Sequence record: NC_025447.1
Direction: 5' to 3' (one strand)
Length of the DNA stretch: 64,000 nucleotides
Under the pieces are notes generated by a model. That model searched no databases. It was not told where the DNA came from and saw nothing but the letters and a program-made list of their open reading frames with translations. How positions within the stretch are numbered: position 1 is the stretch's first letter; the number at the start of each line of letters is the position of its first letter. The position numbers and the translations under genes are program-made. Below, piece by piece: positions 5,890 through 62,556 of the stretch.

Positions 5890-6744
5890 ATGAAACTTTA
5901 TCTAATCGTTGACTACAATAAGGATTATGCTGGTAACTTCACCGAAGATTCGGATGGATATTGCACATCGACTAATGTCAATGTACGTAGCAGTAGTGCT
6001 CATGAACATGAATCTTGTAAAAATCTAAAAGATTTTATCGCATACCGAGCATTTGAAAAGAACTTCTGCCGCAGTAGATATTCGAAGTTTGAGTACCCGT
6101 TAATTGATGTTCCTGATGATTTAATGTTCCAGTTAATGCTGACCGGAGTTCAAGATTATGATTACATAGCGTATAATCATATTACTAAGAAAATTTATAT
6201 TGGTACATCATCACATGACACTTCTATGTATGCATCATGCCCAGATGATCGAATGAATGATAGAAAATCATACTATAGTGGGTCAGTTGGTTTAAATGAT
6301 TCATTAAATAAAAATTCATTCTTTGAGTATGTTTATGATTACCATCATGAGAAAAAAGAACGTGAAGATTACTGTATAGCAATTGATAGTACTAATGGTT
6401 ATGAAGACGTGAAAGAAGCACTTATGCCGTACATTATTGAAAAGTACTACAAAGATTTTCAGTACTGTAGTAATTTTCTAATCAGAAATTCTATTATAAT
6501 CGGTCGCCAATCTAGTGCATACTCTCAGTACTATAATGATTCACCAGTAGCATCGGCAAATGAAATGTGTGATATTTTACAAATTCCACGTGAAGATATG
6601 GCATTCATTTTTACATCTTTTATTGAAGATGATGAGTTGTATATTAAAAATAAACACCGTTTCATGCCAAGCAAGATTGAGGTTATTCGAAGTTTTAGTG
6701 TTGATATACTAACAAATTTCACAGAAAAAACCGAATATAACTGA
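5890..6744 (+). CDS. hypothetical protein (EE..FQ family)
   Basis: start moved to ATG 5890 after GGAG; DDLMFQLMLT. Confidence 0.75.
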   Translation: MKLYLIVDYNKDYAGNFTEDSDGYCTSTNVNVRSSSAHEHESCKNLKDFIAYRAFEKNFCRSRYSKFEYPLIDVPDDLMFQLMLTGVQDYDYIAYNHITKKIYIGTSSHDTSMYASCPDDRMNDRKSYYSGSVGLNDSLNKNSFFEYVYDYHHEKKEREDYCIAIDSTNGYEDVKEALMPYIIEKYYKDFQYCSNFLIRNSIIIGRQSSAYSQYYNDSPVASANEMCDILQIPREDMAFIFTSFIEDDELYIKNKHRFMPSKIEVIRSFSVDILTNFTEKTEYN

Positions 6745-6770
6745 GACAAATGATAAGTTAATGATATAAT
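6743..6770 (+). promoter_or_regulatory. promoter upstream of ncRNA copy A
   Basis: GAGACA-N16-TATAAT with TG extension. Confidence 0.65.
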
Positions 6771-6772
6771 AT

Positions 6773-6807
6773 AAGGTGACAACATAATATGTTAGTCACC
6801 TTTTTTT
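6773..6807 (+). terminator. intrinsic terminator overlapping the promoter start site
   Basis: AAGGTGACAACATA-a-TATGTT(a)GTCACCTT plus T run. Confidence 0.7.
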
Positions 6808-6829
6808 AATCCTGAAAGGTTCCCATAAG

Positions 6830-7312
6830 GAAATGATTAAAAGCCTAATCCACTCGAAAATGTAGAGGGTAGATGAGTAGTCCTTTCAGTACGAACAGCA
6901 GATGAAACCCGTTAGATGATGGCATAGTTTGAACCACTCACGGCAATGCGGCTGTATAAAGAACTCCAATAGGATAAAGAGAGTTCCTCGATAGACATAT
7001 AAGGATCGCACCTTACCAATTATCTAAGGGAGATTTCATAAGAAATATGCGGTCGGAATTATACAATATAGTTGCGTCCAAATTTTGTGAAATCAAATAC
7101 AAGTACTGGTCATATGGTATTTGTATTATGTGTCGGGATGTTTAAGACCGACGACCGTTGCTACAAGAACCGCGATAGAGAGAAACAGAGCAACCCGCTT
7201 TCGTCTCGTAAGAGAATTCGTGATATGAACTATGTGAAGGCCACCAGCGTCAAATTTTTTTGTTCTTTCCCCTGCGGGGGGATGAAATATGCTCAAGCAA
7301 ACCCCGTCAATA
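6830..7312 (+). ncRNA. candidate large structured non-coding RNA, copy A
   Basis: no credible CDS; colinear homology to 61497-62042; covarying stems; cUGCGg and GUAA tetraloops. Confidence 0.75.
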
Positions 7313-7422
7313 TTAATTAAAAGAAAATAGTACTTGTAGAATTAGACATGCGTAGCATGATAATTCTACTGATGTTGATGCAATCAACGTCACGTATATT
7401 CATTGATGTTTCCATAGGAATA

Positions 7423-7968
7423 ATGATGGCATTTATTAGAAAAGAAAAAACTGTTACTTATAAAACTTTGAATTTTGATGATTGCATTAATCAATCACAA
7501 GACGAAGATATCTTTACTGGATATGTGGTTATTAAAGAAAAAGGATGCATTTCTTATATAAAGGAATTACAAAATGGAATTGAAGTGACTTCAGTTAAAT
7601 TACTTCCTACTCAAAAACCAACAATATCAAAAGCCCAGTATGGTAATTATTTTGAAGAAAGATATAGTAATAATTCAATAAGTGTTAAGGCTCATATTAT
7701 TAAAGGAGAACTAGAAGGAGAATATAGAAAATACAACCCACAAGGAAAATGTGTTTGGGTTAAATACTTCAATTCAGGATATGATGTAACATCTGAAATT
7801 ATAGAGTTCTTGGGTTTAAAATGTACCCCTGAGACTATTCATGATTACAAGTTCAATACTGAAGAAGAGTTTAATCTGATGATGCGTTACGGTTCACATT
7901 TTAAATTTTTATATGAATATAACATTGACAGTAGTACTTTTGATAAGATAGTACACAACTGTCTCTAA
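7423..7968 (+). CDS. MORN-variant repeat hypothetical protein
   Basis: KGELEGEYRKYNPQGKCVWVKYFNSG repeat-like segment; start after AGGA. Confidence 0.55.
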   Translation: MMAFIRKEKTVTYKTLNFDDCINQSQDEDIFTGYVVIKEKGCISYIKELQNGIEVTSVKLLPTQKPTISKAQYGNYFEERYSNNSISVKAHIIKGELEGEYRKYNPQGKCVWVKYFNSGYDVTSEIIEFLGLKCTPETIHDYKFNTEEEFNLMMRYGSHFKFLYEYNIDSSTFDKIVHNCL

Positions 7969-7984
7969 CAAAAGGAATTATATA

Positions 7985-8506
7985 ATGTCGAAGAAGGATG
8001 CTTCGAAAAAACATTCAGTACATTTCAGTACTGGAAAAGATAACTGGACAACTCCCAAAGATTTCTTTGAAGATTTGGATGAGTTATGGGGATTTACACT
8101 TGATGCTGCTTGTGTAGATGAGACTGCATTGTGTGATAATTTTTTCACTCCAGAAGATGATTCACTATCACAGGATTGGGGAAATAATATAGTTTGGTTG
8201 AATCCACCATACAGTGACTTGAAAACTTGGTTATCTAAAGCAGTAGATGCATATAATAACGGGGCAACTGTAGTTATTCTTGTACCCTCAAGAACCGACA
8301 CAATTGCTTTTCAGGATTATGCTGCTAAAATATGTGATTGTATTTGTTTTATTAAGGGAAGATTACGATTTGGTATACCAGAAGAACCCGATAAGAAAAC
8401 AGATTCAGCACCATTTCCTTCGTGTCTGATAGTACTGGATAAGTACTTAACCACTGCTAAAATCAATTATCTTAAATCTCTTGGGTTGGTGATGAAGAAT
8501 TTATGA
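7985..8506 (+). CDS. phage DNA N6-adenine methyltransferase (T1/lambdoid Dam-like)
   Basis: W.TP..FF..LD..WGFTLDAA, WLNPPYS catalytic motif IV, LVPSRTDT, FIKGRLRF. Confidence 0.88.
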   Translation: MSKKDASKKHSVHFSTGKDNWTTPKDFFEDLDELWGFTLDAACVDETALCDNFFTPEDDSLSQDWGNNIVWLNPPYSDLKTWLSKAVDAYNNGATVVILVPSRTDTIAFQDYAAKICDCICFIKGRLRFGIPEEPDKKTDSAPFPSCLIVLDKYLTTAKINYLKSLGLVMKNL

Positions 8507-9036
8507 AAGAAACATGTGTATTAACGTTTGGTCGTATTAATCCTGTACATCGTGGACATGGTTTAGTTTTTGAAAAGGCCAAAACATTACAAGAACAGTA
8601 CAATGCTGATTTAAAAATATATCTAAGCACCAGTACTGACAATATAAAAAACCCACTCCCACCTGAACTAAAAATGTATTATACAGAGGGATTCTATCCT
8701 TCAGTGCAAGAGAACATCTACACAGAAGACAATCTATTTGATATAATGAGAGAACTGGATGGAAAGTACTTAGATGTTCTTTTCATTTGTGGTTCTGACC
8801 GTATTGATTCTTTTCAAAAAACTCTTGACATGTACAATGGTAAGTTGTATAATTTTTGTAGTATAAAAGCAATTCAGGCAGGTATTGACCGTAATGTAAG
8901 TCAATATAGCTCAACACAAATGCGTAACTTCGCAAAAAATGAAGATTTTGATAGTTTTCGTGAGTTTTTACCTGGAAATGACGAGGACTTAAAAATACAA
9001 TTATTTGAAGACGTTATAAAATACATGAGGAAATAA
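8503..9036 (+). CDS. HIGH-motif nucleotidyltransferase (cytidyltransferase/NMNAT-like)
   Basis: TFGRINPVHRGH, GSDR, SSTQMR. Confidence 0.8.
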   Translation: MKETCVLTFGRINPVHRGHGLVFEKAKTLQEQYNADLKIYLSTSTDNIKNPLPPELKMYYTEGFYPSVQENIYTEDNLFDIMRELDGKYLDVLFICGSDRIDSFQKTLDMYNGKLYNFCSIKAIQAGIDRNVSQYSSTQMRNFAKNEDFDSFREFLPGNDEDLKIQLFEDVIKYMRK

Positions 9037-59712: not shown

Positions 59713-60017
59713 AAAAATTATTAGTTCCAATGATTTCTTTTTTAATTATAAGTGGGTGTGCCGAGCAAGTAAAACTACAATCCCCCGCACCAATTAAACA
59801 AGAAATTCTGTTAGAAAGATGTGATGATGATACACCTCTACCACAAAAAATTATGATTGACAAAAATGGTTTTAAAGGTTATGATGGTGCAGAAATTCTT
59901 AAAGTACTTACTCGTTGGGATGCAGTCTACAATGAATGTGCTTTAAAACACGACGCATTGATTAAAACTATTCGTGATTTACAAGGTAAAGATATTAAAA
60001 TCAATATCAAGGAATAA
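59709..60017 (+). CDS. outer-membrane spanin lipoprotein (Rz1-like)
   Basis: lipobox IISG-C, Pro-rich, YNECALKHDAL; ATGA overlap with i-spanin. Confidence 0.75.
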   Translation: MKKLLVPMISFLIISGCAEQVKLQSPAPIKQEILLERCDDDTPLPQKIMIDKNGFKGYDGAEILKVLTRWDAVYNECALKHDALIKTIRDLQGKDIKINIKE

Positions 60018-60018
60018 A

Positions 60019-60630
60019 ATGAACAAATATCATGTTTACTATACGACAAAATTATCACTTCTTGAAGAATTAAATCAACGAAGTACTAAGATGAAACGCT
60101 ACACTTTAAATGGTATTACTTTTCGATATTTCCCACAAAAAGTTCTTACTTTTGTTAAGAATCCAAAATGCGTGGCATGTGGGATTGAAGCTACTGAAGT
60201 ACGCATTGAACGTTCATTATGTTCTGATCCAGTATATGGTAAACCACATTTAAATGTATATGCTGTATGTGGTCTTTATGAAGTTTTAATGACAGTTGAC
60301 CATAATCATCTGGCATCTAAGGGTGGACCTGATTTAGAGTCAAACTTTAATACTATGTGCTCCAGATGTAATCAACTACGTTCGAATAAAACTGAAACAG
60401 TTGATGAGTTTCTTGAGAAAGTTAAAGGTCGTAATCTTCTCCAAGAACATATGAATAATTTCTTTAATGTACAAAAAAAGAAAAATAACATTGACAAGTC
60501 GAAACTACTAGAAGAACGTAGGTTACGTCAAGAATTATGGGAAACTGATCATCTATGGCATGTTCGAGAGTTTGGTCGTCATATGAAAGCTTTGAAAAAA
60601 GAACAGAAGAAATTGAATAAACATGATTGA
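60019..60630 (+). CDS. HNH endonuclease
   Basis: CVACG, TVDHNHLASKGG, NFNTMCSRCNQLRSNK. Confidence 0.85.
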   Translation: MNKYHVYYTTKLSLLEELNQRSTKMKRYTLNGITFRYFPQKVLTFVKNPKCVACGIEATEVRIERSLCSDPVYGKPHLNVYAVCGLYEVLMTVDHNHLASKGGPDLESNFNTMCSRCNQLRSNKTETVDEFLEKVKGRNLLQEHMNNFFNVQKKKNNIDKSKLLEERRLRQELWETDHLWHVREFGRHMKALKKEQKKLNKHD

Positions 60631-61437: not shown

Positions 61438-61438
61438 C

Positions 61439-61466
61439 GGGACATAACACATCCTAGTGATATAAT
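61439..61466 (+). promoter_or_regulatory. promoter upstream of ncRNA copy B
   Basis: GGGACA-N16-TATAAT with TG extension. Confidence 0.7.
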
Positions 61467-61496
61467 GTATATTGTAAAATGACAACGGACATTGAA

Positions 61497-62042
61497 AAAT
61501 GGATAATGAGAACCTACTTCTCTTGAAAATGTAAAGGATAGATGAGCTTTACCGTTGTAGCGAACAGCAAAAGAAACCTGTTAGAGTACTGGCATTCAAA
61601 CAAACACGATGTAAGACCACGAATCACGGCGACACGGCTGTATAAAGAACTCCGATAAGCATACAGAGAGTTCCTAGATAGATGTATAAGGTTCGCACCT
61701 TACCAGATTTGCTAAGGGAGTTTAAGAATAGCGGACGCAATTTTACAAGAAAGTTGCGTCCAAAATTTGAGAACAGGTACTACTTTGATCGAATAGAGTT
61801 AGTACTGAGTGCTGTTGATGAAAAGACCAGCGACCGTTGCATATGACTGCGATAGAGAGAAACCGAGCAACCCGCTTTCGCTCTCTAAATTTTGGTACAA
61901 GAAAGATCCGTCCAAAATTTGAGAAATTCGCAATTCGATAATATCCGATGCCATCATCGTCAAGAGAGACTTAATTGTCTCTTTTTTATTACCTTCATTC
62001 CCCTGCGGGGGGATGTAATAGTCCTCAACAAATCCCGTCAAG
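61497..62042 (+). ncRNA. candidate large structured non-coding RNA, copy B
   Basis: colinear homology to 6830-7312; dedicated promoter; covarying stems; cUGCGg loop. Confidence 0.75.
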
Positions 62043-62127
62043 TTTTTAAAGTACATTATCATTTTCAGAAGGAACTAGTTTACGAAGTAAACGCAGTGAC
62101 TTCTTGAGTTACGAGAGAACGAAGTGA

Positions 62128-62556
62128 ATGAGTAACACAACGAAAATATCCGATAAATCCGAATTAACACAAATGTTATTCAAAGAATATTTTGAGTTTC
62201 AGATAAAAGACGAACAACAATTACCACAGCAATATTTGAAAAGAATTAAAGATCCGTCAGTAATTACTAAAGAAACTAATTTTTATAATAGTATTTTGGA
62301 TTTCGTTAAATCAGTTCATACAACAAGACCTATTGTAGTTTTGTTTTTTGATAAATCTATTCCTTTAGTAGTTCCTGAAAATGTATTTTTTATTTCAGAA
62401 ACTGATTTAAATAATCAAAGTACTGTAAGTAGATTAAGAAATTGCTTACTTGTAGTATGTGATTCTTCTTTGTATAATAACAGAATACTATGGGATAGAA
62501 GTAAACGCAATGCAGTTTCGGAAATGAATCCTGAAATTACCTTTATTATTAACTAA
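62128..62556 (+). CDS. hypothetical protein
   Basis: 142 aa. Confidence 0.6.
   Translation: MSNTTKISDKSELTQMLFKEYFEFQIKDEQQLPQQYLKRIKDPSVITKETNFYNSILDFVKSVHTTRPIVVLFFDKSIPLVVPENVFFISETDLNNQSTVSRLRNCLLVVCDSSLYNNRILWDRSKRNAVSEMNPEITFIIN

Follow-up and report, generated by a model that had tools for sequence, protein, structure and literature searches.

The window considered here is a 64,000-nucleotide (nt) stretch of Escherichia phage 121Q (KM507819; bases 186001–250000, + strand), a Rak2-like jumbo phage of the genus Asteriusvirus with a genome of 348.5 kb. Two of its intergenic gaps each hold a copy, here called A and B, of an element that a first inspection of the letters without database searches (the sequence-only reading) had put forward as a candidate large structured RNA. 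Comparison across homologs shows that copies A and B encode a conserved, multi-helix, pseudoknotted RNA of ~420–590 nt with its own promoter, which is, as far as the available tools can tell, a new and previously undescribed RNA class. The family belongs to Rak2-like jumbo phages and recurs in small integrative islands of bacterial chromosomes, and its placement along the phage genomes leads to a tentative proposal that it acts in cis at origins of replication.

The element does exist as diverged paralogs, as had been claimed, but they number four in 121Q rather than two. Blastn over the whole genome, reassembled from the window and six further stretches, places all of them on the + strand and in the same orientation: copy C at 90.3 kb, downstream of a sigma-factor gene; copy A at 192.8 kb (window 6.8 kb); copy B at 247.5 kb (window 61.5 kb); and copy D at 326.6 kb, flanked by the endonuclease VII gene and gp595/baseplate-hub gp596. 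Copies C and D lie outside the window. The genes adjoining copy D are both on the − strand, with RNA D antisense to them, and this copy is therefore regarded as its own transcription unit. The paralogs are strongly diverged, at 55–70% identity. Colinear alignment of the two intergenic gaps in the window was confirmed, and all the shared blocks quoted for them were found where they had been placed. Both CGGCTGTATAAAGAACTCC (6949–6967 and 61635–61653) and GCGATAGAGAGAAAC-N-GAGCAACCCGCTTTCG (7172–7203 and 61849–61880) occur exactly twice in the window, with 0 expected from 100 shuffles, and TCGCACCTTACCA (7006–7018) and TTCCCCTGCGGGGGGATG (7267–7284) were verified by reading the sequence. Copy A is present as described, but its proposed extent was too short, as its start lies upstream of 6830 and conserved hairpins run on to ~7390.

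The structure is drawn from 59 distinct homologs, 51 from Rak2-like jumbo phages and 8 from bacteria, aligned with MAFFT (alignment A3), in which 95 pairs in 19 helices were derived by eye. Controls comprised 500 shuffles, as well as sliding of the 3' partners by 1–3 columns. Standard pairs are formed in 78.6% of the alignment cells (65.7% when shuffled), cells with double-sided changes number 798 (287 when shuffled) and the covariation score is 0.399 (0.168 when shuffled, 0.08–0.19 for the slid controls), with none of the 500 shuffles reaching any of these values. Nine helices, Hc among them, are paired in 99–100% of cells while both of their sides vary. Helices Ha, Hb and Hc of the 3' domain are paired in 99–100% of cells with many double-sided changes; one example pair of Hc is AU 22 times, GC 22 times and CG 12 times, and the GAGAG/CUUUC of copy A becomes AGGGG/CCUCU in RaK2 and elsewhere GGAAG/CUUCC or ACUGG/CCAGU. 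When this 3' domain was re-aligned separately with 32 sequences (alignment A4), 92.5% of cells pair and covariation rises to 0.511, compared with 0.204 after shuffling. The domain contains an H-type pseudoknot, in which GUUGC pairs with GCAAC in the loop of Hc, a pairing that also crosses Hb. The pseudoknot helix is paired in 100% of cells, and one of its positions is CG in 22, UA in 9 and AU in 1 of the A4 sequences.

Covariation among homologs was a check that the sequence-only reading had itself named, and it returned massive compensatory changes, the pseudoknot included. The hairpins singled out by that reading, GAACUC/GAGUUC, UAAGG/CCUUA and CCCC-UGCG-GGGG, are real and lie in helices that covary across the 59 homologs; the same applies to the helix which ends as UCUC-GUAA-GAGA in copy A and bears a long insert in copy B. 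The long hairpin H8, hairpin He and a small 5' hairpin are poorly supported in the MAFFT alignment, probably due to misalignment. Two further pairings were considered and rejected. The first is a closing helix H0 between the 5' and 3' ends (UUGRN with NUCAR), which has one compensatory case, in RaK2, and is equalled by 46% of shuffles; as it lacks statistical support, the 5' and 3' limits of the RNA are tentative. The other is a tertiary pairing of CGAAA in the P1 loop with an invariant GCUUUCG: in RaK2, XaC1 and type-1 copies CUUUC changes together with GAGAG, while the P1 loop stays constant.

Changes from G·U to A-U or G-C are frequent and sensible on the + strand only, since the opposite strand would be left with mismatches; the + strand is accordingly taken as the sense of the RNA, as originally assigned. 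Conservation is, moreover, not driven by a protein, a further point on which the earlier assessment held. The autocorrelation of column variability decays smoothly with no lag-3 peak, the median longest stop-free stretch is 51 codons on the + strand and 72 codons on the − strand, and the open reading frames (ORFs) of copies A and B fall in a different frame and strand. A protein-coding gene or pseudogene is excluded by this lack of 3-periodicity, by the absence of a conserved ORF and by the ORFs differing between copies. The folding energy of copy A alone is not significant, the z-score of its minimum free energy being −1.15 on the + strand and 0.18 on the − strand; therefore thermodynamics was not used and the evidence for structure is comparative.

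The unit of copy A begins with a promoter (6742..6770, +) read from the sequence as TGAGACA, 17 nt, TGATATAAT, consisting of a −35-like TGAGACA at 6742–6748 and an extended −10 box TGATATAAT at 6762–6770, from which transcription likely starts near 6777. Directly after it lies a terminator-like 5' hairpin, GGUGAC...GUCACC, with a U-run (6775..6808, +), and an equivalent hairpin and U-run follow the −10 box in orthologous A-type copies of other phages (L076, L065, L069, L067, L084). The structured core occupies 6810..7312 (+), with an nhmmer match at 6831–7315 of 376 bits and the covariation described for A3. Its first helix, P1, pairs 6850–6855 with 6865–6869 around the loop GAAAAUGUA; this loop, GAAAAYGUA, is invariant across the family. 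H3 (6895–6899 with 6951–6955) is a long-range helix enclosing H4 and a variable hairpin, and is followed by H5 (6961–6966 with 6981–6986, GAACUC/GAGUUC) and the UAAGG/CCUUA hairpin around 7000–7016, all on the + strand. From there, in the 5' to 3' direction, come the invariant CUAAGGGAG, a variable-length (branched) helix, a long hairpin carrying the conserved loop UUGRUYGNAUAGR, and the pseudoknot domain.

The pseudoknot domain of copy A (7137..7253, +) is matched by the covariance model R1 with 97.1 bits (E = 3e-21). Within it, Ha (GUUGC 7157–7161 with GCAAC 7190–7194) crosses both Hb (CGCGA 7171–7175 with UCGUG 7218–7222) and Hc (GAGAG 7178–7182 with CUUUC 7198–7202), and Hd is the hairpin UCUC-GUAA-GAGA at 7204–7215. 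The 3' hairpin (7267..7289, +) reads UUUCCCC-UGCG-GGGGGGAUGA and is succeeded by AAACCCCGUCAAU up to 7312. In this hairpin G509–G512 (A3 numbering) are invariant and the C strand shows one-sided C-to-U (wobble) changes only, which suggests that the G-run has a role beyond hairpin pairing. The motif AAAUCYCGUCAR follows, and then two more conserved hairpins within ~100 nt. In copy A these downstream hairpins, judged by eye, span 7337..7388 (+) and overlap the annotated start of gp416; the first (7337–7369) is formed by GUAGAAUUA...UAAUUCUAC with a loop containing GCGUAGC, and the second (7374–7388) is GUUGAU-GCA-AUCAAC. A homologous downstream module, composed of GAAUUGA, a stem, the loop CGAACGWAGUGAG, a stem and GAAAAUUC, is present in phage and bacterial copies, with stems that covary by eye.

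Copy B is built in the same way. Its promoter (61438..61466, +), read from the sequence and aligned with the other promoters, comprises CGGGACA (61438–61444) and the extended −10 box TGATATAAT (61458–61466). The core spans 61492..62041 (+; nhmmer match 61503–62044, 390 bits) and includes the pseudoknot domain at 61808–61963 (+; R1 match of 100.3 bits, E = 5e-22), a terminator-like variable hairpin at 61964–61987 (+) and the 3' hairpin at ~61996–62017 (+). Such a terminator-like hairpin between the pseudoknot domain and the 3' hairpin occurs in B and D, and is missing from A and C. The downstream hairpins of copy B (62079..62150, +), with a GAACGAAGUGA loop, overlap the annotated start of gp517 (62128). 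Core lengths range from 422 to 591 nt across the family. A recurrent component is a hairpin module of ~30 nt, UACAAUAUAGAUCCGUCCAAAAUUUGAG, which is conserved in sequence and located at helix tips that differ among members; in A3 it occupies columns of about 455–490 and 625–655 in many loci. Both tips bear it in copy B, first as UACAAgAAAGUUGCGUCCAAAAUUUGAGAA at the tip of the variable helix (61744..61773, +) and again at 61896..61925 (+), inserted in Hd where copy A has its GUAA tetraloop, the two forming an internal 30-nt repeat with 93% identity. On its 3' side the module is flanked by CCGUCCA, which is similar to the RNA's two other YCGUCAR motifs, and the module could be one for protein binding or tertiary contact.

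A promoter of the same class stands upstream of every copy, as the sequence-only reading had proposed for the two it knew. Copies A, C and D have TG[AG][AG]GA[CT]-N-TGnTATAAT, and copy B has CGGGACA. The class, TG[AG][AG]GACA-N13-14-TGnTATAAT, occurs ~20 times in 121Q, including upstream of the genes for primase, exonuclease, topoisomerase II, DNA polymerase and sigma factor; examples are located outside the window at genome positions 15293, 21683, 38012, 321899 and 340961, and at the RNA copies at window 6742 and genome 326600. In phage CBB an equivalent class with the −35 element TGAAACG is concentrated before DNA-synthesis genes (PMC5259590), and both CBB and GAP32 carry this TGAAACG class. 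The TGRGACA-type class looks like the counterpart, in this phage group, of the T4 middle promoters, and is termed middle because of the genes it precedes.

Blastn against 50,697 phage records found the element in Rak2-like jumbo phages only, at 2–5 places per genome and in every Rak2-like genome examined. The hosts of these phages are Escherichia, Salmonella, Klebsiella, Cronobacter, Erwinia, Pectobacterium, Serratia, Yersinia and Xanthomonas. Wider collections were screened with a degenerate pattern taken from the most conserved block, GACCGT-N12-24-TA-N4-GAAAC-N-G-N4-ACCCGC, with every match checked by nhmmer; a first variable-gap pattern had given many chance matches in small viral contigs, which were removed with nhmmer. 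The viral collection yielded 57 stretches, all in Rak2-like contigs with no more than 5 per genome, and no island-type contig appeared among the pattern matches. One 15.7-kb viral contig that groups with the bacterial copies (L070) was considered as a packaged island and rejected, being a jumbo-phage fragment at the D locus. Bacterial genomes gave 17 stretches, 8 of them full-length homologs, from Serratia fonticola (a complete chromosome), Serratia sp., Silvania, Enterobacter chinensis, Buttiauxella, two Enterobacteriaceae and one contig that is probably mis-binned. An island copy is present in 2 of 5,426 complete E. coli genomes, and plasmids gave no match among 72,556 records. Metagenomes contributed 93 stretches, of which 82 were confirmed. 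In a divergent metagenome subgroup of contigs with 41–44% GC (L169, L195, L209, L154, L198) only the 3' two-thirds of the family model is matched, and these may represent a truncated or differently built variant. The context of L169 (1008–1254) is bacterial-looking, with an MFS transporter and large BNR-repeat proteins and no integrase in view.

Within the phages the copies are held at fixed places. The A locus is syntenic in RaK2 and in Xanthomonas phage XaC1, where it lies one gene upstream of an adenine methyltransferase gene, and the D locus is kept in EJP2, in L070 and in the distant L160, a metagenome contig of the 41–44% GC subgroup, whose order is baseplate hub, RNA, a 681-aa ORF, portal and prohead protease. 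In a tree the copies cluster by locus across Eneladus- and Mimas-type phages, forming orthologous groups of paralogs. In genomes with five copies these are always on one strand with gaps of 52–84 kb, namely 64, 79, 84, 79 and 53 kb in GAP32 and 63, 81, 84, 77 and 52 kb in Serratia phage BF (a chance of ~0.005 for the minimum gap in each), and 67, 80, 81, 63 and 75 kb in a 366-kb metagenomic contig (~0.0004). The gaps in 121Q are 103, 55, 79 and 112 kb (~0.05).

The bacterial copies lie in small integrative islands, of ~10 kb in the two for which ends are identifiable (L118, L130). In Enterobacter chinensis and relatives a ~10.5-kb island interrupts the pilin gene ppdD (L118:3269-13543; also L119–L123) and consists, in order, of a UvrD-like helicase, DarT, a DarG-like protein, a small resolvase, LprI, a membrane protein, an HTH_35 protein, a CI-like/peptidase S24 repressor, the RNA and a large serine recombinase, with the HTH_35 gene divergent from the repressor. 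No replication or structural genes were seen in this island. DarT and DarG form a known anti-phage toxin-antitoxin pair. The Serratia island adjoins a duplicated rof and has a large serine recombinase, two ParB_N/RepB-like proteins beside the RNA, and HNH and Hcp cargo. Two near-identical tandem copies of rof, a modulator of Rho termination, border the end of this island in Serratia fonticola (L114:4775-5490, L124:13114-13829), and the duplication probably reflects integration in or beside rof with duplication of the target. In Buttiauxella and RIT714 an ORF of ~399 aa, taken to be a putative tyrosine integrase, replaces the serine recombinase. The E. coli island adjoins ffs, contains a tyrosine recombinase gene disrupted by IS3, and carries DUF4326, DUF488 and OB-fold cargo; its copy of the RNA was left unannotated by PGAP. 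The island copies keep the fold as well as a phage-type promoter, TGAAAC-N17-TATACT. When compared with 121Q by tblastn the island proteins gave no match and hence no shared protein partner, so that the RNA gene is the only element common to islands and phage. No replication gene is annotated in the island stretches examined.

Copies that are regularly spaced, share one orientation and persist as diverged paralogs at syntenic sites point to a position-dependent role in cis. The reading that we tentatively favour, at somewhat less than even confidence, is that the RNA is a cis-acting, origin-associated pre-primer or R-loop RNA. RNA polymerase starting at the middle-type promoter would produce a folded transcript that, bearing the invariant G-run close to its 3' end, would remain annealed to the template as an R-loop. 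A T4-like replisome would initiate the leading strand from this R-loop, and the copies, several in number and regularly spaced, would be the origins of the 350-kb genome. Islands with a copy might then hitch-hike, letting an infecting phage replicate them, or might compete with that phage. The annotation of 121Q includes gp43-, gp41- and gp61-like replisome proteins, an RNase H and a UvsW-like helicase. In T4, oriF (uvsY) and oriG (34) combine a middle-mode promoter with an unwinding element, their transcript forms an R-loop that primes the leading strand, and plasmids carrying them replicate on infection; the same review cites ColE1 and mitochondrial origins as transcript-primed (PMC3016281). 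The resemblance lies in several sites per genome, a transcript from a phage middle-type promoter and a T4-like replisome. Two positional likenesses are suggestive only: oriF directly follows genes 26 and 25, as copy D follows the gp26-family gp596 (PF12322 in both), and oriA abuts dam, as copy A is one gene from an N6-adenine methyltransferase gene.

A number of observations weigh against an origin. Minimal T4 origins measure ~100 bp and are made of a promoter and an A+T-rich unwinding element, with no shared motif and no need of a conserved fold; in the present case a fold of 500 nt is strongly selected, and the elaborate junctions, pseudoknot and modular helix-tip inserts found here look more like a trans-acting ribozyme or ribonucleoprotein (RNP) RNA. 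The 45 nt after the 3' conserved block are 72–78% A+T, a mild enrichment over ~66% in the genome and 59% inside the RNA, and GC skew only tracks gene orientation and maps no origin. Transcription of RNA D heads for the hub gene, the reverse of the direction taken by the T4 oriF primer, and the methyltransferase of 121Q is, judging from its sequence motif, apparently not of the T4 Dam family. The four copies of 121Q are unevenly spaced, RaK2-type phages have 2 detectable copies only, 88 kb apart, and, because the genomes compared are related, the spacing statistics do not amount to independent tests.

Some of the features that trouble the origin proposal suit a trans-acting, ornate RNA of the GOLLD, ROOL or OLE kind, that is, a stable, abundant, possibly multimeric or protein-bound molecule acting away from its gene. 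Such an RNA could act as a ribozyme or a sponge, as the scaffold of an RNP or in host takeover, with the copies providing dosage or timed or specialised isoforms, and we hold this to be the main rival, only slightly less probable than an origin. A core of 422–591 nt with ~19 helices, a pseudoknot and invariant junction nucleotides is typical architecture for it, as are variable helices capped by GNRA loops and a conserved hairpin module swapped between helix tips. Every copy comes with a promoter of its own, both neighbours of copy D lie on the strand opposite to it, and a fold kept in phages and in unrelated islands would be expected of an RNA working with host factors. It offers, on the other hand, no reason for near-equidistant, co-oriented and syntenic positions; paralogs of 55–70% identity that are each retained would be odd for mere dosage; and no homology to any ornate RNA of Rfam was detected. 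The sequence-only reading had likened the element in size to ROOL and GOLLD, and of that comparison the large structured RNA stands, while the spacing points to a role in cis rather than to something simply ROOL- or GOLLD-like. A role in cis need not concern replication, since the nascent RNA might modify RNA polymerase, as in the antitermination of HK022 put or lambda nut, or form a long regulatory leader. It would then allow read-through of downstream terminators into long gene blocks and, in the islands, antisense transcription through the cI-like gene into a cro-like operon. The RNA lies close to its promoter and in the direction of most genes downstream, with a regular spacing as if to mark transcription units; many copies have terminator-like hairpins and U-runs within or just after the element, which must be read through to make the conserved 3' part; in the Enterobacter-type island it points through cI toward the HTH_35, membrane-protein and LprI genes, and in the E. 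coli island three genes in its own orientation follow it. Known antitermination RNAs, however, measure ~60–120 nt, and a pseudoknotted fold of 500 nt far exceeds the need of such a role; the RNA is absent behind ~20 further promoters of this class. Membership of the put, nut or EAR elements is rejected on the length of the core and on the opposite-strand genes that follow copy D and the Serratia island copies, which also count against the wider idea, and we consider it unlikely.

Somewhat more remote again is a conflict between island and phage, in which the island version would serve in defence or addiction, as an antitoxin-like or sensor RNA switched on by phage middle transcription, with the phage copies as neutralising mimics, or the reverse. 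Some phages use pseudo-ToxI repeats to escape ToxIN, which offers an analogy. Defence-type cargo does lie beside the island RNA (DarT with the DarG-like protein and UvrD-like helicase; DUF4326, DUF488 and OB-fold proteins; an HNH nuclease; Hcp), and the RNA is the one element shared with the phage, under a promoter of phage type. The cargo and the integrase type vary, though, with no protein partner conserved across islands, and the phage copies are ancient, syntenic and universal among the Rak2-like genomes examined, unlike an accessory anti-defence gene. The lowest probability, a very slight one, is given to the element not being an RNA at all, but a repeated DNA element (a site for protein binding or recombination, or what is left of a mobile element), a protein gene in decay or a similarity arisen by chance. 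In its favour, conservation of the sequence blocks is strong, and copy A alone folds no better than shuffled sequence. Compensatory changes that keep pairing in about a dozen helices contradict it, as do G·U intermediates valid on the + strand only, the lack of 3-periodicity and of a conserved ORF, and shared blocks far above chance; in the annotated stretches that were read, though no search was aimed at them, neither a transposase nor repeat termini turned up next to the copies.

Returning to the origin proposal, its fullest form, which we put forward as doubtful but worth stating, is that this new class of large pseudoknotted RNA would constitute evenly spaced, fold-dependent, transcript-primed origins of Rak2-like phages, and that islands would have captured the RNA gene together with its phage-specific promoter, either to be replicated and spread or to sabotage the phage. 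If this is true, jumbo phages would have in these islands their first satellites or parasites, ones that work through a mimic of an RNA origin. An origin role would reveal how this group of jumbo phages starts replication, add to ColE1 plasmids and mitochondria another natural case of RNA priming that depends on a fold, and open a new route by which mobile islands exploit phages. If that role is wrong, a new large RNA for structural study is still gained. The hosts are tractable (the recorded host of phage Sharanji is E. coli K-12) and the comparative support for the family is unusually clean.

The element also bears on the annotation of these genomes. The CDS of gp516 (window 61799–61954, − strand) lies entirely within RNA copy B on the opposite strand and is probably spurious, and the annotated starts of gp416 (window 7357) and gp517 fall within the conserved downstream hairpins; their true starts are probably further downstream, for example the ATG at 7426 preceded by AGGAA. 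Other phage records have up to 4–5 CDSs of hypothetical proteins placed over the element, and several of those overlapping the RNA are probably spurious. The flanking phage proteins gp415, gp416, gp517, gp595 and gp168 contain no informative Pfam domain. HNH homing-endonuclease genes, gp513 (window 59974–60630) and gp170 (genome 91320–92108), are situated within ~1 kb of copies B and C. The gene gp418 (window 8503–9036) is annotated as NrdB ribonucleotide reductase A; the protein has an HxGH-type motif and only weak, sub-threshold Pfam matches, to cytidylyltransferase-like and FAD-synthetase families, and its RaK2 ortholog is annotated as a cytidyltransferase, so that the 121Q annotation is probably wrong. 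Elsewhere in the 121Q genome, 2 kb at 135194–137161 (L005:35195-37160) have no annotated gene and follow a run of ~17 small paralogous ORFs; a promoter of the same class is located inside this stretch, at 135736.

Among known RNA families the element has no evident place, which agrees with the earlier statement that it could not be assigned. A cmscan of the whole window against Rfam 15 at gathering thresholds gave 0 matches, seven bacterial loci gave none at the gathering threshold, and at E ≤ 10 copy A, a GAP32 copy and one bacterial copy returned only noise matches to unrelated small RNAs. Membership of ROOL, GOLLD, OLE, HEARO or raiA is rejected for want of an Rfam 15 match. The Rfam models likewise found no RNase P RNA, tmRNA or group I/II intron, for which the sequence-only reading had seen no hallmark. 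A vague likeness of ACAGAGCAACCCGCUUUCG to CR-V of RNase P was dropped because this segment forms the covarying Ha and Hc. Literature searches found no description of this RNA in Rak2-like phages.

Large, intricately folded RNAs of bacteria and phages, such as OLE, GOLLD, ROOL, HEARO and raiA, are known, and new classes of them are rare; every one of these has led to fresh biology or structural studies. The RNA described here shares with GOLLD, ROOL and OLE a length of several hundred nt, many covarying helices and pseudoknots. GOLLD and ROOL are presented as large, phage- or prophage-associated RNAs of unknown function (PMC12286853). The present family differs in having no detectable homology to them, in belonging to Rak2-like phages of Enterobacterales and to integrative islands, and in occurring as 2–5 diverged, co-oriented copies per genome that are regularly spaced in five-copy genomes. 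To our knowledge no described ornate RNA combines diverged copies at regular intervals on a 350-kb phage with presence in defence-gene islands under the phage promoter type. Phage PA5oct, a jumbo phage distantly related to 121Q and RaK2, has four intergenic transcripts defined by RNA-seq (ncRNA001–004, 236–619 nt), described as 'putative lncRNA' (PMC7318152). These are similarly unannotated and intergenic, and ncRNA004 parallels copy D as a + strand RNA between two − strand genes. The end of ncRNA004 (L129:817-1435) is a C-run/G-run hairpin, UUUCCUUCCC-AAAC-GGGGAGGAAAU, followed by ...CGCCCGAAUAU, which recalls the 3' end of the 121Q RNA. Homology of ncRNA001, 002 and 004 is not supported, as nhmmer --max finds nothing, and the best match of R1 to PA5oct with filters off has 15 bits (E = 0.14) and falls beyond the ncRNAs and on the wrong strand.

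RNA II of plasmid ColE1, a transcript ~550 nt long and structured, folds in a way that determines whether its hybrid persists at the origin; a G-rich segment aids the persistent hybrid, and RNase H then makes the primer. The likeness is purely functional and concerns the need for a fold and the invariant G-run. Sequence similarity between the two was not detected, the Rfam RNAI model has no match on either strand, and no antisense regulator is evident; the present RNA, in addition, belongs to a phage context with several copies per genome. For the islands, the nearest parallels are those that copy a site of their helper, such as genomic islands mobilised by SXT through an oriT mimic, the cos- or pac-mimicking PICIs, and P4, which are small, bear an integrase, lack replication or transfer machinery of their own and share one element with the helper. 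In the islands described here, nothing but the RNA gene with its phage-type promoter is common to island and phage. They differ from those helper-dependent elements in that what is shared is the gene of an RNA, and the islands conserve its fold as well.

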